Shown here: positions 5,885-44,951 of the stretch, piece by piece
Layout of the letters: each line of letters opens with the position of its first letter
Numbering within the stretch: position 1 is the stretch's first letter
IMG/VR virus record: IMGVR_UViG_3300024999_000029
Span: 248,001 to 312,000 of that record
Length of the DNA: 64,000 nt
Direction: 5' to 3' (one strand)
Position numbers and translations under genes: made by a program
Notes under the pieces: generated by a model
Told to the model about the DNA's origin: nothing
The model's database searches: none
The model's input: only the letters and a program-made list of their open reading frames with translations

Positions 5885-6205
5885 ATGACTAAAGCAGAAC
5901 AGCAAAAACAATGGGACGTTAGAGTAAGTGAATTTAAGGCTAGTGGTCAAAGCCAAGCTGCATGGTGCAAAGCCCAAAATATTAATCTTCGCACATTCAA
6001 TTACTGGTTTGTAAAATCTAAAAAAACTGTTTCGCCATCAAGAAAACCATCAAATTGGATATCCTTAAAAGCCCGTGAACGAGAAGAGAATCCGAGGGAT
6101 TCTGTCTTTAAAGTAAAAATAGGCCAGGCAGCTATTGAGGTAAAGCCTAATTTTGATTCTGTGCTTCTTTTAAACATTGTGAAAGTTCTTAGTACTTTAT
6201 GCTAA
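5885..6205 (+). CDS. tnpA: IS66 accessory protein TnpA
   Basis: W...V..FKASGQSQAAWCK HTH pattern; first IS66 ORF. Confidence 0.9.
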   Translation: MTKAEQQKQWDVRVSEFKASGQSQAAWCKAQNINLRTFNYWFVKSKKTVSPSRKPSNWISLKAREREENPRDSVFKVKIGQAAIEVKPNFDSVLLLNIVKVLSTLC

Positions 6206-6555
6206 ACAAGATTTCCGTAGAGCAGGTATATTTAGCCTGCGGAAGCACTGATATGAGGAAATCAATTGACGGATTAGCAGCTATAGTGCAGGAGGGATTT
6301 TTCTTAGATCCTTTTTCATCTTGTCTATTTGTGTTCTGCAATAAATACCGGAACAAACTGAAAATTCTTAAATGGGAACATAACGGCTTCTGGTTATATT
6401 ATCGAAGGCTTGAAAAAGGAGTTTTTCAATGGCCTAAAGAGAACACTGTATCCACTATGCCAATTAACATTAGGGAGTTAAATTGGCTATTGGATGGATT
6501 GTCATTAGACCAACATCTTGCACACAAAAAAGTATCAGCAAATGCAGTAATATGA
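6199..6555 (+). CDS. tnpB: IS66 accessory protein TnpB
   Basis: VYLACGSTDMRKSIDGL...LFVFCNK...KILKWE.NGFWLYYRRLE.G.F.WP signature. Confidence 0.95.
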   Translation: MLNKISVEQVYLACGSTDMRKSIDGLAAIVQEGFFLDPFSSCLFVFCNKYRNKLKILKWEHNGFWLYYRRLEKGVFQWPKENTVSTMPINIRELNWLLDGLSLDQHLAHKKVSANAVI

Positions 6556-6634
6556 ATACTTTCAAGAAGAAAAAACTTCTAGAAATATCACGAATTTTGT
6601 AGTCAAAATACGTGAGAAATGATATAATAAACGC

Positions 6635-8218
6635 ATGGAAAACACAGTAAATTCAACAGTTACAATAGAAAAGCTACAAGAAGAAAATGAAATTCTTCAT
6701 CAGAAAAATTCACTTCTTCAACAAGAAAAAGCGGAACTAGCAGCCAAGCTAAATTGGTTTGAAGAACAGTTCCGTTTGAATCAACATTGGCGATTCGCAG
6801 CTTCTAGTGAAAAGACAGACCCTGAACAAATTTCACTTTTTAATGAGTCTGAGGTTGAAGCAAAGCCTGATGCGCCTGAACCTACTGTTGAAGAAATCAC
6901 ATATAAACGTCGTAAAAGCAAGGGCCACAGAGAAGAAATGCTTAAAGACCTTCCTATAGAGGTTATAGAGTACCGTCTTTTAGAAGATGAAAAAGTCTGC
7001 GATTGTTGCAGCGGCGAACTTCATGAAATGAGTATTGAGATAAGAAAAGAACTTAAAATTACGCCTGCACAAGTAAGCGTTGTAGAACATAGAAAATGTG
7101 TATATGCCTGCCGTAAATGTGAACAGAATGAAATAAAAACGCCTATCAAAACCGCATCAATGCCAAGGCCTGCAATACCAGGAAGTATAGCATCATCATC
7201 GGCAATAGCCCATATAATGACGGAAAAGTTTGTTAAAGGATTGCCACTTTACCGCCAAGAACAGGACTGGAAGCGTATGGGCGTGGAGATATCCCGCCAA
7301 ACAATGTCTAATTGGATGATCCAGAGTTCTGATAGGTGGCTACGACTAATTTATGAAAGAATGCATGAGCATCTTATGAAAAGGGACATCTTGCATGCCG
7401 ATGAAACCACATTGCAGGTACTGAATGAAGCTGGAAGGCCAGCTGATTCGACCTCATACATGTGGTTGTACCGAACTGGGCGAGAAGGATCTCCTATTGT
7501 ACTTTATGATTATCAAACAACTCGGGCAGGCAAGCATCCCAAAAAATTTCTCGAAGGTTTTAAAGGTTACTTGAATACAGATGGATATTCAGGCTATAAT
7601 GACATGTCTGGAATTATCAACGTTGGCTGTTGGGCTCATGCTCGACGCGGGTTTACTGATGCTTTAAAAGCAATGCCACCTAAAAAGGATGATAAACCCA
7701 CTGCCACCGAAGAAGGATTAGCATTTTGTAACAAGCTATTTGAAATAGAAAGAGGCTTGCATGATGTAACAGTAGAAGAAAGATATGAAGGCCGCCTAAA
7801 TAAAAGTCGTCCAATATTAGAAAAATTCAAGGAATGGCTTAAATATCAGCGCCCGAGAGTTACTCCGAAAAGTGCATTGGGTAAGGCAATTCAATACTGT
7901 CTAAACCAGTGGGATAAACTGGGGTCATTTATGTTGGATGGAAGGCTAGAAATTGATAACAATCGTAGTGAAAGGTCGATTAAACCTTTTGTAATCGGCA
8001 GAAAAAACTGGATATTCTCAAATAGTTCGAAAGGAGCTACTTCTAGTGCTACAATTTATAGCGTTGTTGAAACTGCTAAAGAAAACGGGTTGAATCCATT
8101 TATATACTTGATGTATCTTTTAGAAAGACTGCCCAATATGGACATCAAGGATAAAGATGCCTTGGATAAGCTTATGCCATGGTCGGATAGTTTACCTTCT
8201 GCTTGTAGAGTTAAATAA
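6635..8218 (+). CDS. tnpC: IS66 DDE transposase TnpC
   Basis: Leucine zipper, zinc finger, LHADETT, DGYSGY, CWAHARR and IDNNRSERSIKP motifs. Confidence 0.95.
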   Translation: MENTVNSTVTIEKLQEENEILHQKNSLLQQEKAELAAKLNWFEEQFRLNQHWRFAASSEKTDPEQISLFNESEVEAKPDAPEPTVEEITYKRRKSKGHREEMLKDLPIEVIEYRLLEDEKVCDCCSGELHEMSIEIRKELKITPAQVSVVEHRKCVYACRKCEQNEIKTPIKTASMPRPAIPGSIASSSAIAHIMTEKFVKGLPLYRQEQDWKRMGVEISRQTMSNWMIQSSDRWLRLIYERMHEHLMKRDILHADETTLQVLNEAGRPADSTSYMWLYRTGREGSPIVLYDYQTTRAGKHPKKFLEGFKGYLNTDGYSGYNDMSGIINVGCWAHARRGFTDALKAMPPKKDDKPTATEEGLAFCNKLFEIERGLHDVTVEERYEGRLNKSRPILEKFKEWLKYQRPRVTPKSALGKAIQYCLNQWDKLGSFMLDGRLEIDNNRSERSIKPFVIGRKNWIFSNSSKGATSSATIYSVVETAKENGLNPFIYLMYLLERLPNMDIKDKDALDKLMPWSDSLPSACRVK

Positions 8219-31349: not shown

Positions 31350-32933
31350 ATGGGATTAATTAGTACAGAGGTAATAGTAAAATGGGGAACAAGTAATAAA
31401 AAATGGTATGAAAATAAAGGATATAGTTATACAAAAATAGGCAGTGAATTTGAAGTAAAGGTAGAAGATTTAAGTAATGGTAGTAGTACAAAAGTTGATT
31501 GTAAATGTGATGGTTGTGGAAAAGATTTAAACAATATTATATGGTATGATTACAAAAAACAAGTTAATGACGATGGAAAATACTACTGCCAGAGATGCTC
31601 AAATAAATTATTTGGAAACAAAAAGATGAATGAGACAATAATAAAAAACAGCAAATCATTTGAACAATGGTGCATAGAGAATGACAAACAAGATATTCTT
31701 AATAGGTGGGATTATGAATTAAATGATAATATAAAACCAAATGAAATATGTTTTAGTACACATAAAAAATATTATTTTAAATGCCCACAAGAAATACACG
31801 AAAGCGAATTAAAAAACATATGTGGTTTTACAACTGGTAATAATAAAATGATATGTAATAAATGTAATAGTTTTGCGCAGTGGTGTTTAGATAATCATAA
31901 AGAATATATTTTAGATTTATGGGACTATGATAAAAATAATAAAACTCCATATGATATTTCATATGGAACTAAATTAAAACATTATTTCAAATGCCCAAGA
32001 AATATACACGAATCAGAATTTAAAAATATAAATTCTTTCACATCTGGATATAACAATATACAATGTAATAAATGCAATTCTTTTTCACAATTTGGCATTG
32101 ACAATATTTGTGAAGATTTTCTTGAAAAGTATTGGGATTGGGAATTAAATACTGTAAATCCTTGGGATATTTCTAAATGTGCAAATGAACCCAAAGTGTG
32201 GATTAAATGCCAGAATTCAGAAAAGGAATATCATAATAGTTATGATATAGTTCCAAATAGTTTTACAGGACAAAATCAGAGGTGTCCCTATTGTAATAAT
32301 AAACATGGTAAAGTTCATTTACTAGATTCTTTGGGTACATTGTATCCAGAAGTGTTAGATATGTGGTCAGATAAAAATGGAAAAACGCCATATGAATATT
32401 CTTCGTGGAGCAGTCAAGAAGCATATTGGAAGTGTTTAGATGGGCATGAAGATTATAAAAGAAAAATATCAGAATCAAATGCAACAAATTTTCGTTGTCC
32501 AAAATGTACAGAAGAACGCACGGAAAGTTTATTATCTGAGAAGGTTAAATTATATTTAAATGAAATAGGATATGTAATTTTAGGTGAAAGAAATTGCAAT
32601 ATAATTGCCAAAAACCCCAAAACAAAACGAAGTTTGCCCTATGATATTGAAGTAGCAGATTTAAAATTGATTTGCGAAATTCATGGGAAACAGCACTATG
32701 TCATTACGGGCTATACAATACAAACCGCAAAACATAATAACACCACACCAGAATACGAATTACATTATCAAAAATTGAAAGACAGATATAAACGTATCTT
32801 TGCTAAAAAGCAAGGATATTTTTATTTGGAGATTCCTTATTGGACTGACGATAAGGATGAAACTTGGAAGCAATTAATTGATGAAAAAATTAATGAAATT
32901 TTAAATAATCAAAATATAAAAGAAGTGGTTTAA
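31350..32933 (+). CDS. Free-standing zinc-ribbon / EDxHD-like putative homing endonuclease
   Basis: Several zinc-ribbon repeats; LPYDIE...ICEIHGKQHY...D..K...GYFYLEIPYW nuclease; paralog of 8338 and 46802. Confidence 0.8.
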   Translation: MGLISTEVIVKWGTSNKKWYENKGYSYTKIGSEFEVKVEDLSNGSSTKVDCKCDGCGKDLNNIIWYDYKKQVNDDGKYYCQRCSNKLFGNKKMNETIIKNSKSFEQWCIENDKQDILNRWDYELNDNIKPNEICFSTHKKYYFKCPQEIHESELKNICGFTTGNNKMICNKCNSFAQWCLDNHKEYILDLWDYDKNNKTPYDISYGTKLKHYFKCPRNIHESEFKNINSFTSGYNNIQCNKCNSFSQFGIDNICEDFLEKYWDWELNTVNPWDISKCANEPKVWIKCQNSEKEYHNSYDIVPNSFTGQNQRCPYCNNKHGKVHLLDSLGTLYPEVLDMWSDKNGKTPYEYSSWSSQEAYWKCLDGHEDYKRKISESNATNFRCPKCTEERTESLLSEKVKLYLNEIGYVILGERNCNIIAKNPKTKRSLPYDIEVADLKLICEIHGKQHYVITGYTIQTAKHNNTTPEYELHYQKLKDRYKRIFAKKQGYFYLEIPYWTDDKDETWKQLIDEKINEILNNQNIKEVV

Positions 32934-32986: not shown

Positions 32987-33853
32987 ATGCAGAAAATTTT
33001 AATCCGCAAAGGCTCGGATGCAGAAAGACTTACAATAACACCCGATAATGGTGAGCCAATTTTCACGACAGATACTAAGAAACTATATGTCGGCGATAAT
33101 AGTACGGTTGGAGGTATAGAAATTTCTGGAGGTGTTTCATCTAGTTCATTATCAACTGTGCATCTAAATGGAGCAGGTGCAGTTTTAGTTAAAGAAGAGC
33201 ATTTTGGAAATATGATTCATATAGAGTCGGGTACTTCTATTGCTCTTGCAAAAGCAGATTTTACCAAAGACGGAAGTTTATATATACAAAATCATTCCGG
33301 TACTCAATTACCTGTCAACTTTACAGGTGTATTTGAAGGGGTGTATGACGCAGGAAAACAAAGTGATTTAATAGCTACTCAAACTACAACTCTTGAATAT
33401 TTAGAAATTATGCTAGTTGTAGTTACTGAGAATAGTGGTAGTAAATTTATTAATTTTACAAAACTTAGTGGTAAAATAGAAACAGGTTCTTGGGTTCCTA
33501 CAATTACATTCACAGCCGTAGACCCCGATGTATCAGGTGCAACAGTTTCTCTTTATAAAGCAATTTATACTAGAATTGATGATAAAGTTAATTTTAATTT
33601 ATCTTTTGGAATTAATAGTTTTACGGCAGGTAGATATTTGATAGGTTCTTATACATTGCCAAAAACTAGAATTGGAACGGAGAGTATTATTTCAGTAGTA
33701 AATAGTTCATTTACATCACAATATGTACCAACATATGCATTATTATTTTTTAGTATTCCTACTATCTTTATTGGAACTCCAGATATTCGATTACCTGCAT
33801 CATCGTTAGTTACTATTAATGTAATTGGTTCATATGTAACCAACGAAGCGTAG
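32987..33853 (+). CDS. Fibre/appendage protein with Mtd_N/hyaluronidase-N-like anchor
   Basis: ILIRKG....R....P..GEP..TTDTKKLYVGD N-terminus. Confidence 0.6.
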   Translation: MQKILIRKGSDAERLTITPDNGEPIFTTDTKKLYVGDNSTVGGIEISGGVSSSSLSTVHLNGAGAVLVKEEHFGNMIHIESGTSIALAKADFTKDGSLYIQNHSGTQLPVNFTGVFEGVYDAGKQSDLIATQTTTLEYLEIMLVVVTENSGSKFINFTKLSGKIETGSWVPTITFTAVDPDVSGATVSLYKAIYTRIDDKVNFNLSFGINSFTAGRYLIGSYTLPKTRIGTESIISVVNSSFTSQYVPTYALLFFSIPTIFIGTPDIRLPASSLVTINVIGSYVTNEA

Positions 33854-33864
33854 GAGGTATAAAC

Positions 33865-35958
33865 ATGAGTGATATTCTCATAAAAAGAGGCAAAGAATCG
33901 AATAGAACTTCATTTATGCCATTAAGAGGAGAGCCAATTGTAAGTTTTGATGACACAACTGGTAAACCCCGATTGTTTTTGGGTACAGGAACTGATATTG
34001 GTGGCATTGAAATAGGCACAAGTGCCGCTCACACTCATGAAGAATCTGATATTACTAATCTGGTATCGGATCTTAGTGCTAAAGAGGTATCAGCCAATAA
34101 AAGGGATTTAATTGAAGGATATACAACATCTTCCGCTTATCCATCGACAAAAGGGTTGGCTGCATATCTACATTCTACTCTATATAAAAGACAAGGCACT
34201 CTAGCCGACGTTATTGGTGGGACAGTAACATCATATACTGAAGGTGTATATCATTATACAAAAATAAGTTTTAGTGATTATGTGCGCTTCGACTATTTAA
34301 GTATAACTCCCAATCCTCCTAATTCTTATAAAATTAAGATTGATGTTTCTCTTGACGGCACAACATGGATGTTTATAACAAGCACCTTTGATAGTGTTGG
34401 AATAATGGCTTCTAATGGTACTCTTGTGGCAACAGCAAAACACGTCAGATTCGGAGCTAGCACAGTAGATAATATACCATCAGATGATTATACTTATAAG
34501 ATTCAAGAATATAATATATCTGCGAATTCTGAAAAAATAGCTAATAAAGTAACTGCATTTCAAACAACACCAGATAATACACATTATCCTAGTGAAAAAT
34601 TACTAAAAGATCAATTAGATTATAAGTCTTCTTTTGAGTCACCTTTATGTTTATATCCAACAGAAGGGCAAGTTGTAGCTTCAAGAATTCCATATGTAAT
34701 AACTGAAGCTGGAAGTGCTATTAGATATTGTAATTTATCTGCAAATAATCAAATATTAGCTGTTTTACAAGATGTTGCATGGAGTACAGCAACTGCTGAT
34801 TATGATGCATATAATGGAATTATTAAAATAGTTTCAGGTACAACTATAGAGTTTACAGATGATGTATTCGTTTCATTAGAAGCAACTTTAAGAGCAGATA
34901 GTTTTACTGGTTCTAGTGATAAATTTTTAAGATTTGCGTGGGTATGGGCTGATAATGATGATGTTATATCTGGAACAAATACATCATATATTTTCCCGCC
35001 AACTGAAAGTTATGGTTATAATTCATTGCCAATAGTAAAAGTATCAAGGAAATTTCATAAAGGAAATAAGATTAAGCTTAGAGTTACAGGTGCAGGTTCA
35101 ACTGGCACATCAACTGCTAGTATTCAAAAAGAAAGTACAAAATGTTACATTTATGAAATTAATAATACTTCAGGATATGAAAGAGATAAAGTACGTACCA
35201 TTATTCGTAAAAAATCTGATAGTAGTATTGTTTGGGATAGTGGAGAGATAGGTAAAACTACTAATCTTATTAAACGTTCTATGAATATGGCATATTCAAT
35301 ATGGGATAAAAACCTATGTAGTGCCACAGGCAATGCAAATTCACTTGGCATGTCAAAGATTACTCTTACGAGTAATTGGGATGTGTCAGTTAATCAACGC
35401 TTATATGGATATAGAAGTGGCGATGAGTATACCTTGCAAATTATAGTAATGAATCCAACAATAAATAAAATAAAAGTATCATTAGAAGATTATATTGGAC
35501 ATCAGGGAATTTATGCGGAATTTGGCTTAACTGACAGTGGTTCTATTATATCTAGTGGTACACACGGAGTTGATTCAGGGACATTAATACAAGCACAAAT
35601 TACTTATCCGCAGACAGGAATGTATGTATTGAATATTAGGGGAACTCCTGTGGTGGACACTAGTAGTTTTAAAGACCTAGATTCACAATTGGATTTAGAA
35701 TTTGAAGATGATATTAGCGGTGAAATTTATATTGGATTTGCTAGTGTGAAAAAGGGATTATATGATATTGCTAATAATTATCATTTATTAACTGATGATG
35801 CTAATATTCCTGAGCCGACCTATGCTAAATATTTGGTGGGATTAGATACTATGTTGGATGCTTCAGAAAATTATGAAGTAATAGTTGAAGATGTGACTAC
35901 AAAGGGGTTAAAAACATCTCAAAGTGATATTGTGAGTTTTTCAACTGGTTCATCGTAA
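33865..35958 (+). CDS. Large fibre/appendage protein with the same N-terminal anchor
   Basis: ILIKRGKES.R....PLRGEP...FDD....P.L..G.G...GG N-terminus; beta-rich body. Confidence 0.6.
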   Translation: MSDILIKRGKESNRTSFMPLRGEPIVSFDDTTGKPRLFLGTGTDIGGIEIGTSAAHTHEESDITNLVSDLSAKEVSANKRDLIEGYTTSSAYPSTKGLAAYLHSTLYKRQGTLADVIGGTVTSYTEGVYHYTKISFSDYVRFDYLSITPNPPNSYKIKIDVSLDGTTWMFITSTFDSVGIMASNGTLVATAKHVRFGASTVDNIPSDDYTYKIQEYNISANSEKIANKVTAFQTTPDNTHYPSEKLLKDQLDYKSSFESPLCLYPTEGQVVASRIPYVITEAGSAIRYCNLSANNQILAVLQDVAWSTATADYDAYNGIIKIVSGTTIEFTDDVFVSLEATLRADSFTGSSDKFLRFAWVWADNDDVISGTNTSYIFPPTESYGYNSLPIVKVSRKFHKGNKIKLRVTGAGSTGTSTASIQKESTKCYIYEINNTSGYERDKVRTIIRKKSDSSIVWDSGEIGKTTNLIKRSMNMAYSIWDKNLCSATGNANSLGMSKITLTSNWDVSVNQRLYGYRSGDEYTLQIIVMNPTINKIKVSLEDYIGHQGIYAEFGLTDSGSIISSGTHGVDSGTLIQAQITYPQTGMYVLNIRGTPVVDTSSFKDLDSQLDLEFEDDISGEIYIGFASVKKGLYDIANNYHLLTDDANIPEPTYAKYLVGLDTMLDASENYEVIVEDVTTKGLKTSQSDIVSFSTGSS

Positions 35959-35983
35959 TGGATTGGTGGTGAATAATTAATAT

Positions 35984-36445
35984 ATGAATATTTTATTAAG
36001 GAGAGGAAAGGAATCTAAAAGAAATACTATAACTCCATTAAGAGGCGAATTATTGATTGGTTTTGATGATGTGACTGATAAACCTAAATTGTATATGGGC
36101 AATGGCGTTAATGTTGGTGGATTACCATTATCAGATAATATTGGTTCAACATGGACTCCAATTATTACAGGAGATGGAACTGTAGAAAATGCTATGTATA
36201 CAAGAATTGACAATATAGTAACTTTTAGTTTAAGATTAAGTTGGACTAGTAGTACAGCAACATTTACACTTCCGATTGCAAGTGATTTTACAGATATATC
36301 AGATTTAATTGGAACTGTGATTTGTTTTCCAGATGTAGGGACTGAAATGAGGGTTGAGGCTGACGTTTCGTTAAATCAAGGTAGTGTGCGTACTGTATCA
36401 AGTGCTACTAATGCGTTGATTACTGGACAGTATATTATTAGGTAA
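35984..36445 (+). CDS. Short fibre protein: same anchor plus a C-terminal domain shared with 32987
   Basis: ILLRRGKES anchor; W.P.I...A.YTRID..V.F.L shared with the C-terminal domain of 32987-33853. Confidence 0.6.
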   Translation: MNILLRRGKESKRNTITPLRGELLIGFDDVTDKPKLYMGNGVNVGGLPLSDNIGSTWTPIITGDGTVENAMYTRIDNIVTFSLRLSWTSSTATFTLPIASDFTDISDLIGTVICFPDVGTEMRVEADVSLNQGSVRTVSSATNALITGQYIIR

Positions 36446-37263: not shown

Positions 37264-37293
37264 TTGACATATTGGTATTTTTTATGATATATT
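37264..37293 (+). promoter_or_regulatory. SigA-type promoter upstream of the agr-like cassette
   Basis: TTGACA at 37264, then TGA-TATATT extended -10 (18-bp spacer). Confidence 0.5.
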
Positions 37294-37324: not shown

Positions 37325-37750
37325 ATGAGAAAAATCAAATTTAGCAAATGGTCAATGTTGACATTAGTTGCTGTAGGAATTGTTACATGTAGTTTATTAT
37401 ATTATTCTGTAGTTTTCATTAAAGATAGACAATTAGAATTTATTAGTACTGATGGATTTAAGCTTCTTGGAATGATATTTCTAATTTTTTGGATTTTATT
37501 ATTTTGCACTATACTTGTTTTTAAAAATTATGAATTATTGAAAAGGGTATTTGTTTTAACAGAAAAAAACAATGAATTAATCCAAGAAAATAATAATTTA
37601 TTGAAACAAGTAATAGCACATAATAACAACCACGTACAACAATGCGAATATCAATATGACAACATCGTTCGCTCCAATATGGAAGTTAAAGAAATGATAG
37701 TAGATTCATCTATTGATTATCGGAGGACGAACGATGTTGTTGAGAAATAA
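37325..37750 (+). CDS. Two-TM membrane protein with cytoplasmic coiled coil
   Basis: Two hydrophobic segments followed by an N/Q/E-rich heptad region. Confidence 0.6.
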   Translation: MRKIKFSKWSMLTLVAVGIVTCSLLYYSVVFIKDRQLEFISTDGFKLLGMIFLIFWILLFCTILVFKNYELLKRVFVLTEKNNELIQENNNLLKQVIAHNNNHVQQCEYQYDNIVRSNMEVKEMIVDSSIDYRRTNDVVEK

Positions 37751-38066
37751 GATTAATTGGATTGATACTAATTCATTCAAAAAGAATGAAGGATATATCA
37801 ATAAACTTTTAAAATTTTATAAGTTTGAAGAGAATAAAGATTATAAATTAATATATAATGGTTATGGAGACTATGATTTACTTATAACTTGGAATAGAAA
37901 AACTTATAAAATTCAGATAGATGAAGAATCTCAATGTTATAATTTGCTTGCTAGAAATGAAGCAAATAATATTAAAAAAAAAGAAAGATACCATTTTTTA
38001 GAATCTTTTCACGGAGATGATTTAATTTTAAAAATTATAAAACATATTAAAAGTCGAGAGGTTTAA
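37734..38066 (+). CDS. Hypothetical protein, paralog of 55795-56067
   Basis: GGAGG SD favours the ATG at 37734; YG..D.L.T..R.TYK.Q...CY.LL.RN...YH shared. Confidence 0.6.
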   Translation: MLLRNKINWIDTNSFKKNEGYINKLLKFYKFEENKDYKLIYNGYGDYDLLITWNRKTYKIQIDEESQCYNLLARNEANNIKKKERYHFLESFHGDDLILKIIKHIKSREV

Positions 38067-38067
38067 A

Positions 38068-38514
38068 ATGGAAACAATAATTAAAGAATTTGTATTATTT
38101 AATTTAATAGAAAATTTATTTATTGTTTTATTTTTCTTGATGTTTAATAAAATTAAAGAAAACCCAATGATTATAATAGTTCATGTGTTTATGTTAAGTT
38201 CCCTTAATACAATTTTAAAAGTATTGTTTTCAGGTTCTATATTAATGCAATTATTTGGAATAATAGTTATTATAATATATTTTACAAGTATATATCATGT
38301 TAAAATTTCACATAGCATAATAACCGTTATAATTTCATTTTCTATTTTATTAGTATCAGAGGCAATCATAGTAATATTTTATTTAAATATTACTATGATT
38401 GATATGTCAAAAATGTCAAATGATTTTAATAAGTTTTTATGGTTTATTCCAATTAGAATTTTGGAATATATTTCATTATATATTTTGTACTTAATAAAAA
38501 ATAAAATGAGGTGA
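38068..38514 (+). CDS. Polytopic membrane protein resembling an AgrC-type sensor module without kinase
   Basis: About five hydrophobic segments in 148 aa; no HisKA or HATPase motifs; next to the peptide ORF and agrB. Confidence 0.5.
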   Translation: METIIKEFVLFNLIENLFIVLFFLMFNKIKENPMIIIVHVFMLSSLNTILKVLFSGSILMQLFGIIVIIIYFTSIYHVKISHSIITVIISFSILLVSEAIIVIFYLNITMIDMSKMSNDFNKFLWFIPIRILEYISLYILYLIKNKMR

Positions 38515-38519
38515 TATTA

Positions 38520-38570
38520 ATGATGATTAGCACTGAGAAATGGTGGTTTGGAGATATTAAAAGAAGGTAA
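38520..38570 (+). CDS. 16-aa peptide MMISTEKWWFGDIKRR, candidate AgrD-like substrate
   Basis: GAGGTG SD 6 nt before the ATG; followed by a terminator; immediately upstream of agrB. Confidence 0.6.
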   Translation: MMISTEKWWFGDIKRR

Positions 38571-38588
38571 TTTAAAAACACATTTACT

Positions 38589-38617
38589 AGGAGTAGATAA
38601 AAATCTACTCCTTTTTT
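38589..38617 (+). terminator. Intrinsic terminator between the peptide ORF and agrB
   Basis: Perfect 10-bp stem AGGAGTAGAT/ATCTACTCCT, AAAA loop, T run. Confidence 0.85.
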
Positions 38618-38648
38618 GTGTTCAATTTTATTTTAAGGATGATGGTAT

Positions 38649-39218
38649 TTGTTAGATAATATATCAGAAAAGTTTATAAATTGGCTTATAAAAATAAAAA
38701 TTCTTAAGCAAGAACAATACTCAGATTGGGATTATTGGTTTAGGATTTTTTTATTTAATTCTATAGTTGTTTTTTCTTTATTAACAATAAATATATTGTT
38801 AGGCAGTTGGATTCAGTTAATTATAATTAGTATAGTAGTAAATGTTTTACGAATGTATAGTGGAGGTTTCCATGCTCCACAAGGTAAATTAGAATATTGT
38901 GTTCTGTTAACAATTCCCTTAGTTACAATTGCATCTTTCATTGCAAAGTATCTTCAATTATATCCATTGCAATTATTCATGGTTGCAGTTTTTTTAGGTA
39001 TTCTTATAATCAGAAAAATTCCATTAATATCAGAAGAAGAAAAAGAAAATAAGTCAGATAAATATTTTAGAGATAAATATATTTATAATTTTTTAATATT
39101 TTACAGTATTAGTTGTTTGGCAATAATGATAGATTCAAATATATGCAATATTATTTCAAGCGCAATAAGCATGGGAATTATATTAGTTGCATTAGCAATG
39201 AAAAGTTCAACAAAATAA
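38649..39218 (+). CDS. agrB: Accessory gene regulator B (AgrB) family membrane peptidase
   Basis: LRMYSGGFHA...C signature with the catalytic His and Cys, multiple TM helices, 189 aa. Confidence 0.88.
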   Translation: MLDNISEKFINWLIKIKILKQEQYSDWDYWFRIFLFNSIVVFSLLTINILLGSWIQLIIISIVVNVLRMYSGGFHAPQGKLEYCVLLTIPLVTIASFIAKYLQLYPLQLFMVAVFLGILIIRKIPLISEEEKENKSDKYFRDKYIYNFLIFYSISCLAIMIDSNICNIISSAISMGIILVALAMKSSTK

Positions 39219-39348
39219 AAGTATGATTTTATGGGAAGAAAAGAAAAATCTTCCCTTATACCTCTCAAATAATTAAAGAAAGGAATGAAATAAAGATACG
39301 TTTTTAATTATAGAAACGTATTAATTTAAATTGAGAGGATGATAAAAA

Positions 39349-43946: not shown

Positions 43947-44951
43947 ATGAGTAAAATAACTAGAGTTAAATACTTTACTGAAGATAGAAAATCTAAAATA
44001 AATCCTGATAATCTAAAATTATATGATAGGTATTTAAAGTCAAGTATTTTGAAAAATAAAGATGTCGAAACTACTACATATAAAGTTTATAAAAATTATA
44101 TGGATATGTTTTTAGTTTATTTGTCTGAGCAATGGGATAATGTTGGTCTATATGATCCAGAATTATTTAAAAACTCCATAGATGTAATCGAAGGATATAT
44201 GGGTTTTTGTCAGGAAGTTTTACATAATAATAAGAAAGTAATTAACACGAAGGTATCAACGATATCTTCTTTTTATTTATGGTCATTAAAACGTAGATTA
44301 ATTGATAGACATCCTTTCGATAAACAAGTAGATAGAATGAAAGGCGCTTCTGATGAGAAAATAATTAATTCTTACTTTCTAAATGATGAAGAAATAGAAA
44401 AAGTTTCTCAAGGAATAACTGAAGAAAATGGCTACGATATTATTGATAAATTGCTTTGGAATATTATGCTTGATTCCGCAAACAGAATAGGAGCAATCGA
44501 CAACTTAAAACTATCTAATTTAGACATAGAAAACTGTATGTTTACTGACATAAGAGAAAAAAGAGGATATAGAGTTGAAGTTGTAGTATCTGAGCCAACC
44601 ATGCAATTAATTGAGGAGTGGTTAGAAAAAAGAAAATCTATGGATAATTTAGAGGTAGATGCTTTATTTATCAGTAATTATGGTGGTGAGTATAGACAAA
44701 TGACAAAATCTACACTCCAAAATCGAATTAAAAACATAGGTAAGATATTAGGTTTGGAAGATTTTCATAGTCACTGTATTAGGAAAACTACTTTGAATAA
44801 TATTTATGACAAGACTGGGGATTTATCTTTAGCTGCCGAAATGGGAAATCATAAATCTACTGAAACTACTAGGAGTAGTTACATAAAGCCTAAATCAAAA
44901 ACAGAGATTAGAGACAAAATTAAAGAATTAATGGATAAAAAGAAAGAATAA
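43947..44951 (+). CDS. Tyrosine recombinase (integrase/XerD family)
   Basis: Catalytic set: R (SANRIG), K (REKRG), HxxR (HCIRK), H (GNHKS), Y (SSYIK). Confidence 0.88.
   Translation: MSKITRVKYFTEDRKSKINPDNLKLYDRYLKSSILKNKDVETTTYKVYKNYMDMFLVYLSEQWDNVGLYDPELFKNSIDVIEGYMGFCQEVLHNNKKVINTKVSTISSFYLWSLKRRLIDRHPFDKQVDRMKGASDEKIINSYFLNDEEIEKVSQGITEENGYDIIDKLLWNIMLDSANRIGAIDNLKLSNLDIENCMFTDIREKRGYRVEVVVSEPTMQLIEEWLEKRKSMDNLEVDALFISNYGGEYRQMTKSTLQNRIKNIGKILGLEDFHSHCIRKTTLNNIYDKTGDLSLAAEMGNHKSTETTRSSYIKPKSKTEIRDKIKELMDKKKE

Follow-up and report, generated by a model that had tools for sequence, protein, structure and literature searches.

The region examined lies within a 64,000-nucleotide window (positions 248,001 to 312,000 of the 349,050-bp IMG/VR virus record IMGVR_UViG_3300024999_000029; CheckV, 99% complete) and comprises, in order, a promoter, two small genes (A and B), a gene for a five-helix membrane protein (C), a micropeptide gene, a terminator, and agrB. 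The coordinates of these features are collected in the table below.

Features of the agrB-linked cassette (positions are those of the 64,000-nucleotide window)
Position	Strand	Feature	Description
37264..37293	+	Sigma-70-type promoter of the cassette	TTGACA, 18 nt, TG-TATATT; consensus match only
37325..37750	+	Gene A	141-aa membrane protein with 2 TM segments and a cytoplasmic helical/coiled-coil tail
37713..38066	+	Gene B	Small soluble protein; 117 aa from TTG 37713 or, more likely, 110 aa from ATG 37734 behind GGAGGA; overlaps the end of gene A
38068..38514	+	Gene C	148-aa free-standing AgrC-type sensor domain (helices 1-5); no DHp and no ATPase domain
38520..38570	+	Micropeptide gene (proposed AgrB substrate, mini-AgrD)	16 codons, leaderless, Cys-free; core K-W-W-F-G, then a basic tail
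38589..38620	+	Intrinsic terminator, probably leaky	10-bp stem, AAAA loop, T-run
38649..39218	+	agrB	189-aa AgrB-family membrane cysteine peptidase
39233..39255	+	Hairpin, likely end of the unit	GGGAAGA...TCTTCCC

The open reading frames were first compared with a preliminary description of the locus, which had reported a 148-aa protein with about five TM segments directly before a peptide ORF, a 2-TM coiled-coil protein in the same apparent operon, and no histidine kinase or LytTR regulator in the window. These observations were confirmed, with one correction concerning the peptide ORF (see below). Gene A encodes two hydrophobic segments (residues ∼10-31 and 45-66) followed by a heptad-like helical stretch, although the coiled coil received only weak support (Pfam HALZ, E 0.1; NCBIfam MreC coil, E 0.003). 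The shorter, 110-aa form of B is the form called in a sister phage locus, L002. The AlphaFold2 model of C consisted of five long helices (residues 2-26, 33-53, 57-76, 80-109, and 119-146) with a mean pLDDT of 94 and a pTM of 0.88, and basic residues in loops 1 and 3 and in the C-terminal tail fit an N-out/C-in topology, as read from the sequence. The promoter matched 11 of 12 consensus positions, with an extended TG, and lies 32 nt before gene A in a stretch that aligns with L002. AgrB matched the Pfam profile (PF04647) over positions 1-183 of 185 (E 4e-19; 69.1 bits against a cutoff of 23) and is the single copy in the genome. It has the motif L-R-x4-G-G-x-H-A...C, which corresponds to R70, G75, H77, and C84 of S. 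aureus AgrB, residues required for activity (PMC10196373). The Cys was invariant and the His was kept in 6 of 7 cassette AgrBs.

Next, the kinase and regulator components of an agr system were sought in the whole virus record. Nothing was detected for HATPase_c_5, HATPase_c, LytTR, or Response_reg at E≤1. C itself ends a few residues after helix 5 and has no Pfam domain; it lacks a sixth or seventh helix, the SPOB_a/DHp domain with the phospho-accepting His, and the GHKL ATPase domain.

To ascertain the origin of C, a series of sequence and structure searches was performed. Pfam, NCBIfam, and PHROGs scans gave nothing for C, a scan of all 20 members of its family also gave nothing, and the family profile found no sequence match in the PDB. 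A word-based search found only one relative of C, tblastn of C and of AgrB against 50,697 GenBank phage records found nothing, and a scan of viral contigs with AgrB found nothing. Foldseek and VIA-align searches of the C model against the PDB returned only generic helical bundles (E above 3; Z at most 7.8). In contrast, the profile of the C family matched N-terminal residues ∼10-150 of 430- to 481-aa ORFs in Clostridia genomes. These ORFs carry SPOB_a/HATPase_c/HATPase_c_5 and abut AgrB (loci L019, L021, L024, and L027) or a receiver-LytTR regulator (L028). Alignment of the family profile with the N termini of these kinases by hhalign gave a probability of 98.2% (E 3e-14; 144 columns), and hmmsearch gave the same kinase coordinates. 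A structural search of the Atlas matched C to the membrane domain of a 485-aa HATPase_c protein cluster (TM-score 0.70 over 140 residues). The five-helix membrane domains are collinear from residue ∼10, and conserved Glu residues in helix 1 and helix 4 are shared between C and the kinases. These results demonstrate that C is a free-standing homologue of the first five helices of the AgrC-type (HPK10) receptor domain. They also served to rule out C as a membrane protease of the MroQ/CPBP type, for which there was no fold or profile match; the conserved Glu residues of C are shared with the kinases.

The preliminary description had inferred kinase-less, sensor-like membrane proteins, and had named as refuting conditions a lack of similarity to AgrC sensor modules or a cognate kinase elsewhere in the phage. 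Both were examined, and the idea survived for C. It did not for its neighbors, so that the interpretation was supported only in part. A and B showed no similarity to any part of AgrC-type kinases (hhalign probabilities of 0.9% and 0.1%, respectively), and A has no conserved His. Thus, a split AgrC, with A as helices 6-7 plus DHp and B as a degenerate ATPase, was rejected. The AlphaFold2 model of B (pLDDT 85) had an alpha-alpha-beta5-alpha fold with only generic alpha/beta matches of the frataxin, RWD, and chaperone-like kind (Z at most 6.6), and B was not found in 401 Clostridia genomes. Prediction of a complex of A with C gave neither support nor evidence against.

The family of C is stand-alone and under selection, comprising 20 proteins of 139-178 aa with near-invariant F11, E15, E98, and P128. 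The cassette was conserved in the phage contexts read (L002, L007, L008, L010, L011, L012, L038, L039, and L041), while two further loci, L009 and L040, end before agrB. A is an invariant member of the cassette, with homologues in the same position in L002, L008, L010, L011, and L012, and B is conserved in L002, L008-L012, and L009. The 111-aa gene after agrB was rejected as a cassette member because it has no similarity to the gene in that position in L010. Given the constant length and conserved residues of diverged members, the confidently predicted fold, synteny over loci that share only 25-45% identity, and an independent stand-alone clade in bacteria, it is very unlikely that C is a functionless, decaying remnant of a captured agrC gene, even though it stops where the cytoplasmic part of the kinase would begin.

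The phage of the window and that of L002 are otherwise near identical, and their cassettes were compared directly. A was 100% and B was 97% identical, but C and AgrB were only 45% and 38% identical, a pattern that resembles agr specificity groups. The variable stretch also borders a tail-fiber gene that differs between the two phages, and part of the divergence could therefore be ordinary mosaicism.

We then asked which ORF encodes the peptide. A 35-codon TTG ORF at 38548-38655 runs through the terminator hairpin and has no counterpart in L002 and was rejected. The conserved peptide gene is instead the 16-codon ORF, which has a strong ribosome-binding site, with GAGGTG 6 nt before its ATG. An ORF of the same length is present in L002 despite DNA divergence, and equivalent ORFs of 10-25 codons with a Shine-Dalgarno sequence and ATG are present in L007, L008, L010, L011, L012, L038 (two), L039, L040, and L041. 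Of the 14 peptides collected, none has Cys, Ser/Thr is not conserved, and 11 carry K-x-x-x-G; within the 64-kb window, the 16-codon ORF is the only one of its kind that fits the motif. By the usual criteria, the peptides are not AgrD (PF05931). The only AgrD profile hit in the genome was a 13.9-bit stretch with three internal stop codons elsewhere, and the small ORFs had no Pfam or NCBIfam hits. The peptides are 10-25 residues rather than ∼45, with zero to about 12 residues before the core and a tail of 4-15 mostly basic residues (G-x-hydrophobic-x-K/R-K/R) instead of an acidic, Pro-containing one; they lack the 24-aa amphipathic leader of the canonical layout (PMC10196373), have Lys rather than Cys or Ser four residues before the conserved Gly in 11 of 14, and are encoded upstream of agrB. 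They nonetheless resemble AgrD in being small, next to agrB, and built of a hydrophobic/aromatic core followed by a charged tail, and the longer versions (L010, L038, and L040) start with a short basic MKK stretch.

A terminator scan placed the hairpin after the peptide gene at 38589-38612, in agreement with an RNA centroid fold. L002 has the same hairpin with two compensatory pair changes, and hairpins stand at the same place in the other loci, where most, but not that of L010, are followed by a T-run. agrB starts 29 nt after the T-run, leaving no room for its own promoter. The micro-ORF was rejected as an attenuation leader because the distance from its stop codon to the hairpin varies from 18 to about 140 nt between loci while the peptide motif is conserved. 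The stem after agrB is kept with changes in L002, inside an 83%-identical intergenic stretch, but was not called by the terminator scan because its T-run is weak.

Together, these data suggest that the locus is one copy of a five-part cassette found in large Bacillota phages. What the analysis itself establishes is the homology of C to AgrC-type sensors, the retention of catalytic residues in AgrB, the positional conservation of the micropeptide gene with a motif (K-x-hydrophobic-hydrophobic-G and a short basic tail) shared by most of the 14 peptides, the joint divergence of C, peptide, and AgrB while A and B stay the same, and the lack of a detectable kinase or response regulator in the phage. 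This points to a new, kinase-independent kind of peptide signaling or peptide handling in phages. The remainder is inferred from sequence, position, and covariation alone: that AgrB acts on the peptide, removing the basic tail after the hydrophobic core and probably cyclizing the core; that the product leaves the cell; and that C binds it at the membrane, as the AgrC sensor binds its autoinducer. Because C ends right after helix 5, occupancy would have to be passed on by protein contacts rather than phosphorylation, with A and B, whose genes abut or overlap that of C, or a host kinase as candidate partners, although no output domain was recognized. The result would be a phage-owned, pherotype-specific peptide signal, an agr-type counterpart of arbitrium that lets related phages or lysogens sense each other. 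We favor this reading only tentatively. Arbitrium (AimP/AimR) of SPbeta-group phages is likewise a phage-encoded short-peptide system with allele-specific peptide/receptor pairs, but this is a functional analogy only; arbitrium uses a cytoplasmic, DNA-binding TPR receptor and a secreted propeptide cut by host proteases, whereas here the candidate receptor is a membrane protein with no DNA-binding part and a dedicated AgrB peptidase is present. A more speculative and improbable extension is that AgrB cuts the leaderless precursor before the conserved Gly and joins the new C terminus to the side chain of the Lys four residues upstream, giving a new kind of autoinducer that C would receive and signal through A and B without phosphorylation. 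A Lys-x-x-x isopeptide ring would have 16 atoms (counted by hand), the same size as the Cys-x-x-x-x thiolactone ring of classical AIPs.

The main rival, possible but less likely, is that C is a biosynthesis or export partner of AgrB. In this view, C would hold the leaderless micropeptide at the inner face of the membrane, in place of the amphipathic leader that AgrD needs (PMC10196373), and would present it to AgrB and/or help the product across the membrane; how AIP is exported is not understood (PMC10196373). The peptide gene starts inside or next to the end of gene C, its ribosome-binding site lies inside the 3' end of gene C in the loci read, and in three family members (P0017, P0018, and P0020) the peptide is in frame with the cytoplasmic C terminus of C. 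C and AgrB also covary, and the gene pair is kept in bacteria, with overlapping or abutting genes. However, the conserved intramembrane Glu residues are shared with real kinases and are thus sensor features rather than new catalytic ones, and C and AgrB lie on opposite sides of the terminator and would not be made in equal amounts.

Stand-alone sensor-AgrB-AgrD triads in bacteria (L018/L042, L020, and L022), apparently undescribed, also bear on this point. They contain a kinase-less five-helix homologue of 151-155 aa directly before agrB and a canonical Cys-containing AgrD after it, with no micropeptide, no A or B genes, and no two-component system in the operon; one is flanked by PAS-HisKA kinases. 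Since that AgrD has its own leader, no substitute would be needed there, and the stand-alone sensor is unlikely to exist only to help leaderless peptides. The triads form a separate clade from the phage family. They are possibly of the type of the C. perfringens agr operon CPE1563-CPE1562-agrB-agrD (PMC2706048), which likewise has two cotranscribed "hypothetical" genes before agrBD and no adjacent two-component system, and the family may explain such genes in clostridia. agr, the model peptide quorum-sensing system of Gram-positive bacteria, is always drawn as peptide, AgrB, receptor kinase, and regulator; here, the sensor half exists as an independent, conserved protein that travels with AgrB, in the phage cassette with peptides that break the Cys/Ser rule. 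If C is a receptor, it shows how an agr signal can be read without a kinase and would give large phages a private, allele-specific channel; if it is a handling partner, it bears on how autoinducers are presented and exported. Either way, the parts are small and easy to express, and the window and L002 alleles offer a natural specificity comparison.

The preliminary description had proposed that the phage protein soaks up autoinducer, poisons host AgrC dimers, or signals through the coiled-coil partner; all three remain hypothetical. Phages are known to carry agr genes, and C is a sensor without a kinase in a phage with no detectable kinase or regulator, as a decoy or dominant-negative protein that silences host quorum sensing would be. 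This nevertheless seems unlikely, because the cassette has its own AgrB and its own covarying peptide, which argues for a self-contained system. The phage family forms one group apart from the bacterial kinases sampled, with long branches, and its profile scores only 10-38 bits against them, so C does not look like a recent copy of a host receptor. The agr locus of Clostridioides difficile phage phiCDHM1 (agrC-agrB-agrD; PMC3901668; HG531805) also lacks agrA and has the sensor gene directly upstream of agrB, the same sensor-then-agrB order as in the cassette and in L019, L021, and L027, which supports C as a sensor. Its AgrC, however, is a full 453-aa kinase with HATPase_c_5, its AgrD is annotated as a separate gene downstream of agrB, and it has no A or B genes and no micropeptide. 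C was only marginally similar to the C. difficile/phiCDHM1 AgrC sensor (hhalign probability of 12-18%; P about 1e-3); the clear signal came only with kinases found by searching Clostridia genomes.

Finally, the peptide could be a small antibacterial or lysis-modulating product matured by AgrB, with C, possibly with A, as the immunity or target-protection protein, resembling the sublancin production and immunity genes of SPbeta-type prophages. This also appears unlikely. C descends from a signal receptor domain and had no hits to any known immunity family in the scans above, peptides of 10-16 residues with a 4-residue hydrophobic core are small for a bacteriocin, and no transporter gene is in the cassette. 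Still, peptide, enzyme, and membrane protein diversify together, as toxin-immunity sets also do, and a peptide gene followed by a leaky terminator and then the enzyme gene is a layout typical of ribosomal peptide clusters. Neighboring genes in L011, L012, and L041 carry Pfam Yom* families (YomU_Tube, YomV_2nd, YomN, and YomO), which are SPbeta-type genes, and an endolysin lies two genes downstream in L010.

The cassette lies on the + strand among tail-fibre-like genes, a tyrosine recombinase, and a tape-measure gene of a 349,050-bp virus record, of which the window is bases 248001-312000 and which is judged 99% complete. G+C content of the window is about 29%, with a local peak of 0.384 against about 0.26 to 0.34 in the rest of the window. 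The preliminary description, which reported a 148-aa membrane protein with about five TM segments and a 2-TM coiled-coil protein next to agrB, with no kinase or LytTR regulator, was correct as an observation. No kinase, receiver, or LytTR domain was detected in the window, nor was any detected in the whole phage genome.

Coordinates of the cassette and of other features, in the window unless another locus is named
Feature	Coordinates	Strand	Description
Promoter	37264-37293	+	near consensus
Gene A	37325-37750	+	141 aa; two membrane segments, then a helical tail
Gene B	37713 or, more likely, 37734 to 38066	+	overlaps the end of A
Gene C	38068-38514	+	148 aa; starts two bases after B
Micropeptide ORF	38520-38570	+	16 codons; GAGGTG ribosome-binding site
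Intrinsic terminator	38589-38612 plus a T-run	+
agrB	38649-39218	+	Pfam AgrB, E 4e-19
Second hairpin	39233-39255	+
Intergenic stretch after agrB	39256-39348
Conserved hairpin in that stretch	about 39297-39322		just before the 111-aa gene
Mtd_N match	32987-33853		Pfam Mtd_N
Tail-fibre-like ORFs and tyrosine recombinase, with integrase genes	32987-36445 and 43947-44951; L010 3977-6656; L038 1-1386
DUF4379 proteins	31350-32933; L011 2574-3332; L038 6066-6495
Local G+C peak	6001-8000
Tandem micropeptide genes	L038 3467-3640
Micropeptide in frame with C	L041 3435-3492; proteins P0017, P0018, P0020
Bacterial locus L042	G217:C51:117000-130000
Bacterial locus L043	G288:C6:24000-37000

First, the identity of C was examined. 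Family libraries and PDB sequences gave no match, and PDB folds gave only generic helical bundles. An exhaustive profile search of 1.84 billion representative proteins found only 20 relatives, all of them stand-alone proteins of 139 to 178 aa and all from metagenomes. Near-invariant residues in this family are F11, E15 (helix 1), E98 (helix 4), and P128 (helix 5), and AlphaFold2 with that alignment predicted a five-helix bundle at pLDDT 94. The first hint of a relationship was structural: a search of the ESM Atlas returned three clusters of ∼155- to 165-aa Bacillota membrane proteins and, at TM 0.70 over 140 residues, a cluster of 485-aa proteins in which 55% of members carry HATPase_c.

To determine if C is related to AgrC, which had been set beforehand as a test of the sensor reading, 401 Clostridia genomes were searched in six frames with the family profile, and two kinds of hit came out on top. 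The first comprised the N-terminal ∼10 to 150 residues of open frames of 430 to 481 aa that carry SPOB_a plus HATPase_c/HATPase_c_5 and that abut or overlap an AgrB gene (loci L019, L021, L024, and L027) or a receiver-LytTR regulator (locus L028); these are AgrC-type kinases. The second comprised stand-alone proteins of 151 to 165 aa. Those in loci L018, L020, and L022 lie directly before AgrB and are followed by a textbook Cys-containing AgrD, while in L023/L043 a 177-aa ORF separates the sensor and AgrB genes. Profile-profile comparison of the phage family with the first 220 to 240 residues of ten such kinases gave a probability of 98.2% (E 3e-14) over 144 collinear columns, and hmmsearch confirmed the coordinates. 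Against the C. difficile/phiCDHM1 AgrC the signal was only marginal, which fits the known rapid divergence of these sensor domains. C is thus a homologue of helices 1 to 5 of the AgrC-type sensor and ends where the kinases continue. In a tree, the phage proteins form one group (support 78/95) and the bacterial stand-alone proteins form another (95/85), nested among kinases. This suggests that the kinase part was lost, or never joined, at least twice, although branches are long and this point is weak.

The bacterial stand-alone sensor loci sit among other signalling genes. In L042 the sensor-AgrB-AgrD triad is flanked on both sides by PAS-HisKA-HATPase_c kinases of 617 and 639 aa, and in L043 the sensor and AgrB genes lie next to GGDEF/HD-GYP proteins. 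These arrangements could mean that split receptor-kinase pairs exist in bacteria.

Next, the gene context of the phage family was examined. Every family member whose contig could be read sits in a phage context, with integrases, tail genes, and neighbouring genes carrying Pfam Yom* families (YomU_Tube, YomV_2nd, and others). The gene order is always the same: an A-like gene, a B-like gene, C, a gap of about 80 to 260 nt, and then an AgrB-like gene, except that the contigs of loci L009 and L040 end before the agrB position. In the cassette AgrBs the active-site Cys is invariant and the His is present in 6 of 7, with the roles of these residues taken from PMC10196373. Proteins with the DUF4379 treble-clef zinc-finger domain (four matched stretches in the window protein) recur near the cassette in several of these phages.

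The gap always contains a short ORF behind a strong ribosome-binding site that lies in or just after the end of gene C. A hairpin follows, and in most loci, though not in L010, the hairpin is followed by a T-run. Examples of the predicted peptides are MMISTEKWWFGDIKRR in the window, MKFIWGEIKK in L012, MKTWFGIINKR in L039, and MKKIIRTVLNSKKTMWGNIERR in L010. L038 has two such genes in tandem before the terminator and agrB, each with its own ribosome-binding site, and their peptides differ at several positions but share the K-I-L-F-G core. Of 14 peptides, 11 have Lys-x-x-x-Gly, 10 fit K-x-x-hydrophobic-G-(2-4 residues)-K/R-K/R at the C-terminus, and none has Cys. In the 64-kb window, only 27 ORFs of this size have a ribosome-binding site, and only this one fits the motif. 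In three family members (P0017, P0018, and P0020), the micropeptide is in the same reading frame as the sensor-like protein with no stop codon between them; L041 still has an internal GGAGGT-6 nt-ATG, so both a fusion and a free peptide could be made. A 35-codon TTG ORF that overlaps the terminator was rejected as the peptide gene because it is not conserved, and no canonical AgrD was found in the genome. The terminators of the window and of the sister locus L002 differ by two compensated base pairs. agrB starts 29 nt after the T-run, so it must be transcribed by read-through. A peptide gene followed by a leaky terminator and then the enzyme gene is a layout common in ribosomal peptide clusters.

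L002, from a groundwater metagenome, is a near-twin of this phage over the cassette, and the two were compared gene by gene.

Identity of the L002 cassette to the window
Gene or region	Identity to the window
Upstream 122-aa gene	92%
A	100%
B	97%
C	45%
AgrB	38% (no detectable DNA match)
Peptide	changed in its N-terminal ten residues; the first five tail residues (GDIKR) are kept
Intergenic DNA after agrB	83%

This pattern mirrors the hypervariable AgrB-AgrD-AgrC-sensor block of staphylococcal agr groups. It indicates, from sequence co-variation alone, that C, the peptide, and AgrB work on each other, while A and B are allele-independent. However, the next tail-fibre gene also differs between the two phages (22% identity, unrelated), so mosaic exchange contributes to divergence in this area. 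Three consecutive tail-fibre-like ORFs of the window share an Mtd_N-type N-terminus, a tyrosine recombinase lies a few kilobases downstream, and integrase genes also sit just upstream of the cassette in L010 and L038, which may reflect recombinase-driven tail-fibre switching or exchange.

C has five helices, and the kinases have about seven before the DHp domain. We therefore wanted to determine if A (two helices plus a coil) and B supply the missing parts. They do not: hhalign probabilities against full-length kinases were 0.9% for A and 0.1% for B, and A has no conserved histidine. B is predicted to fold as alpha-alpha-beta5-alpha (pLDDT 85), with only generic structural neighbours, and it was not found in the 401 Clostridia genomes. 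A and B are therefore phage-specific accessories without an assigned function.

The analysis establishes the homology of C to the AgrC-type sensor domain, an intact AgrB, a conserved micropeptide gene and terminator, the co-variation of C, the peptide, and AgrB, and the lack of any detected kinase or regulator; peptide processing, binding, and output are inferences. In the reading we tentatively prefer, though at somewhat less than even likelihood, AgrB would trim and probably cyclise the peptide, C would bind the product as a kinase-less receptor, and output would go through protein contacts, either with A and B or with a host enzyme. It is possible, but less likely, that C is a handling or export partner of AgrB. 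This is favoured by the tight coupling of the C and peptide genes and by the three in-frame C-peptide arrangements, but the bacterial triads have an AgrD with its own leader, which argues against it. The interpretation in the preliminary description was only partly supported: similarity of C to AgrC sensor modules was borne out, but its proposal that C acts as a decoy against host agr is considered unlikely. A toxin-plus-immunity role is considered equally unlikely, and a dead remnant very unlikely. More speculatively, if cleavage is before the conserved Gly, a bond from the Lys at -4 to the new C-terminus would give a 16-membered ring (counted by hand), the ring size of classical thiolactone autoinducers.

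Phage-borne agr genes are known from phiCDHM1 (PMC3901668), in which the receptor is a full kinase and a separate AgrD gene is annotated downstream of agrB. A tblastn search of 50,697 GenBank phage records found no relative of the C or AgrB described here, and full-text literature searches found no description of stand-alone AgrC sensor proteins. The C. perfringens agr operon has two uncharacterised upstream genes and no adjacent two-component system (PMC2706048, PMC4963840) and may be the bacterial equivalent. The components of the phage cassette are agr-derived, but their arrangement is unreported: a kinase-less sensor, a Cys-free mini-precursor, two new partners, and a pherotype-like allele pair in phages. 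Downstream of the cassette, the intergenic stretch after agrB is more conserved between the window and L002 than agrB itself, and it contains a further conserved hairpin.
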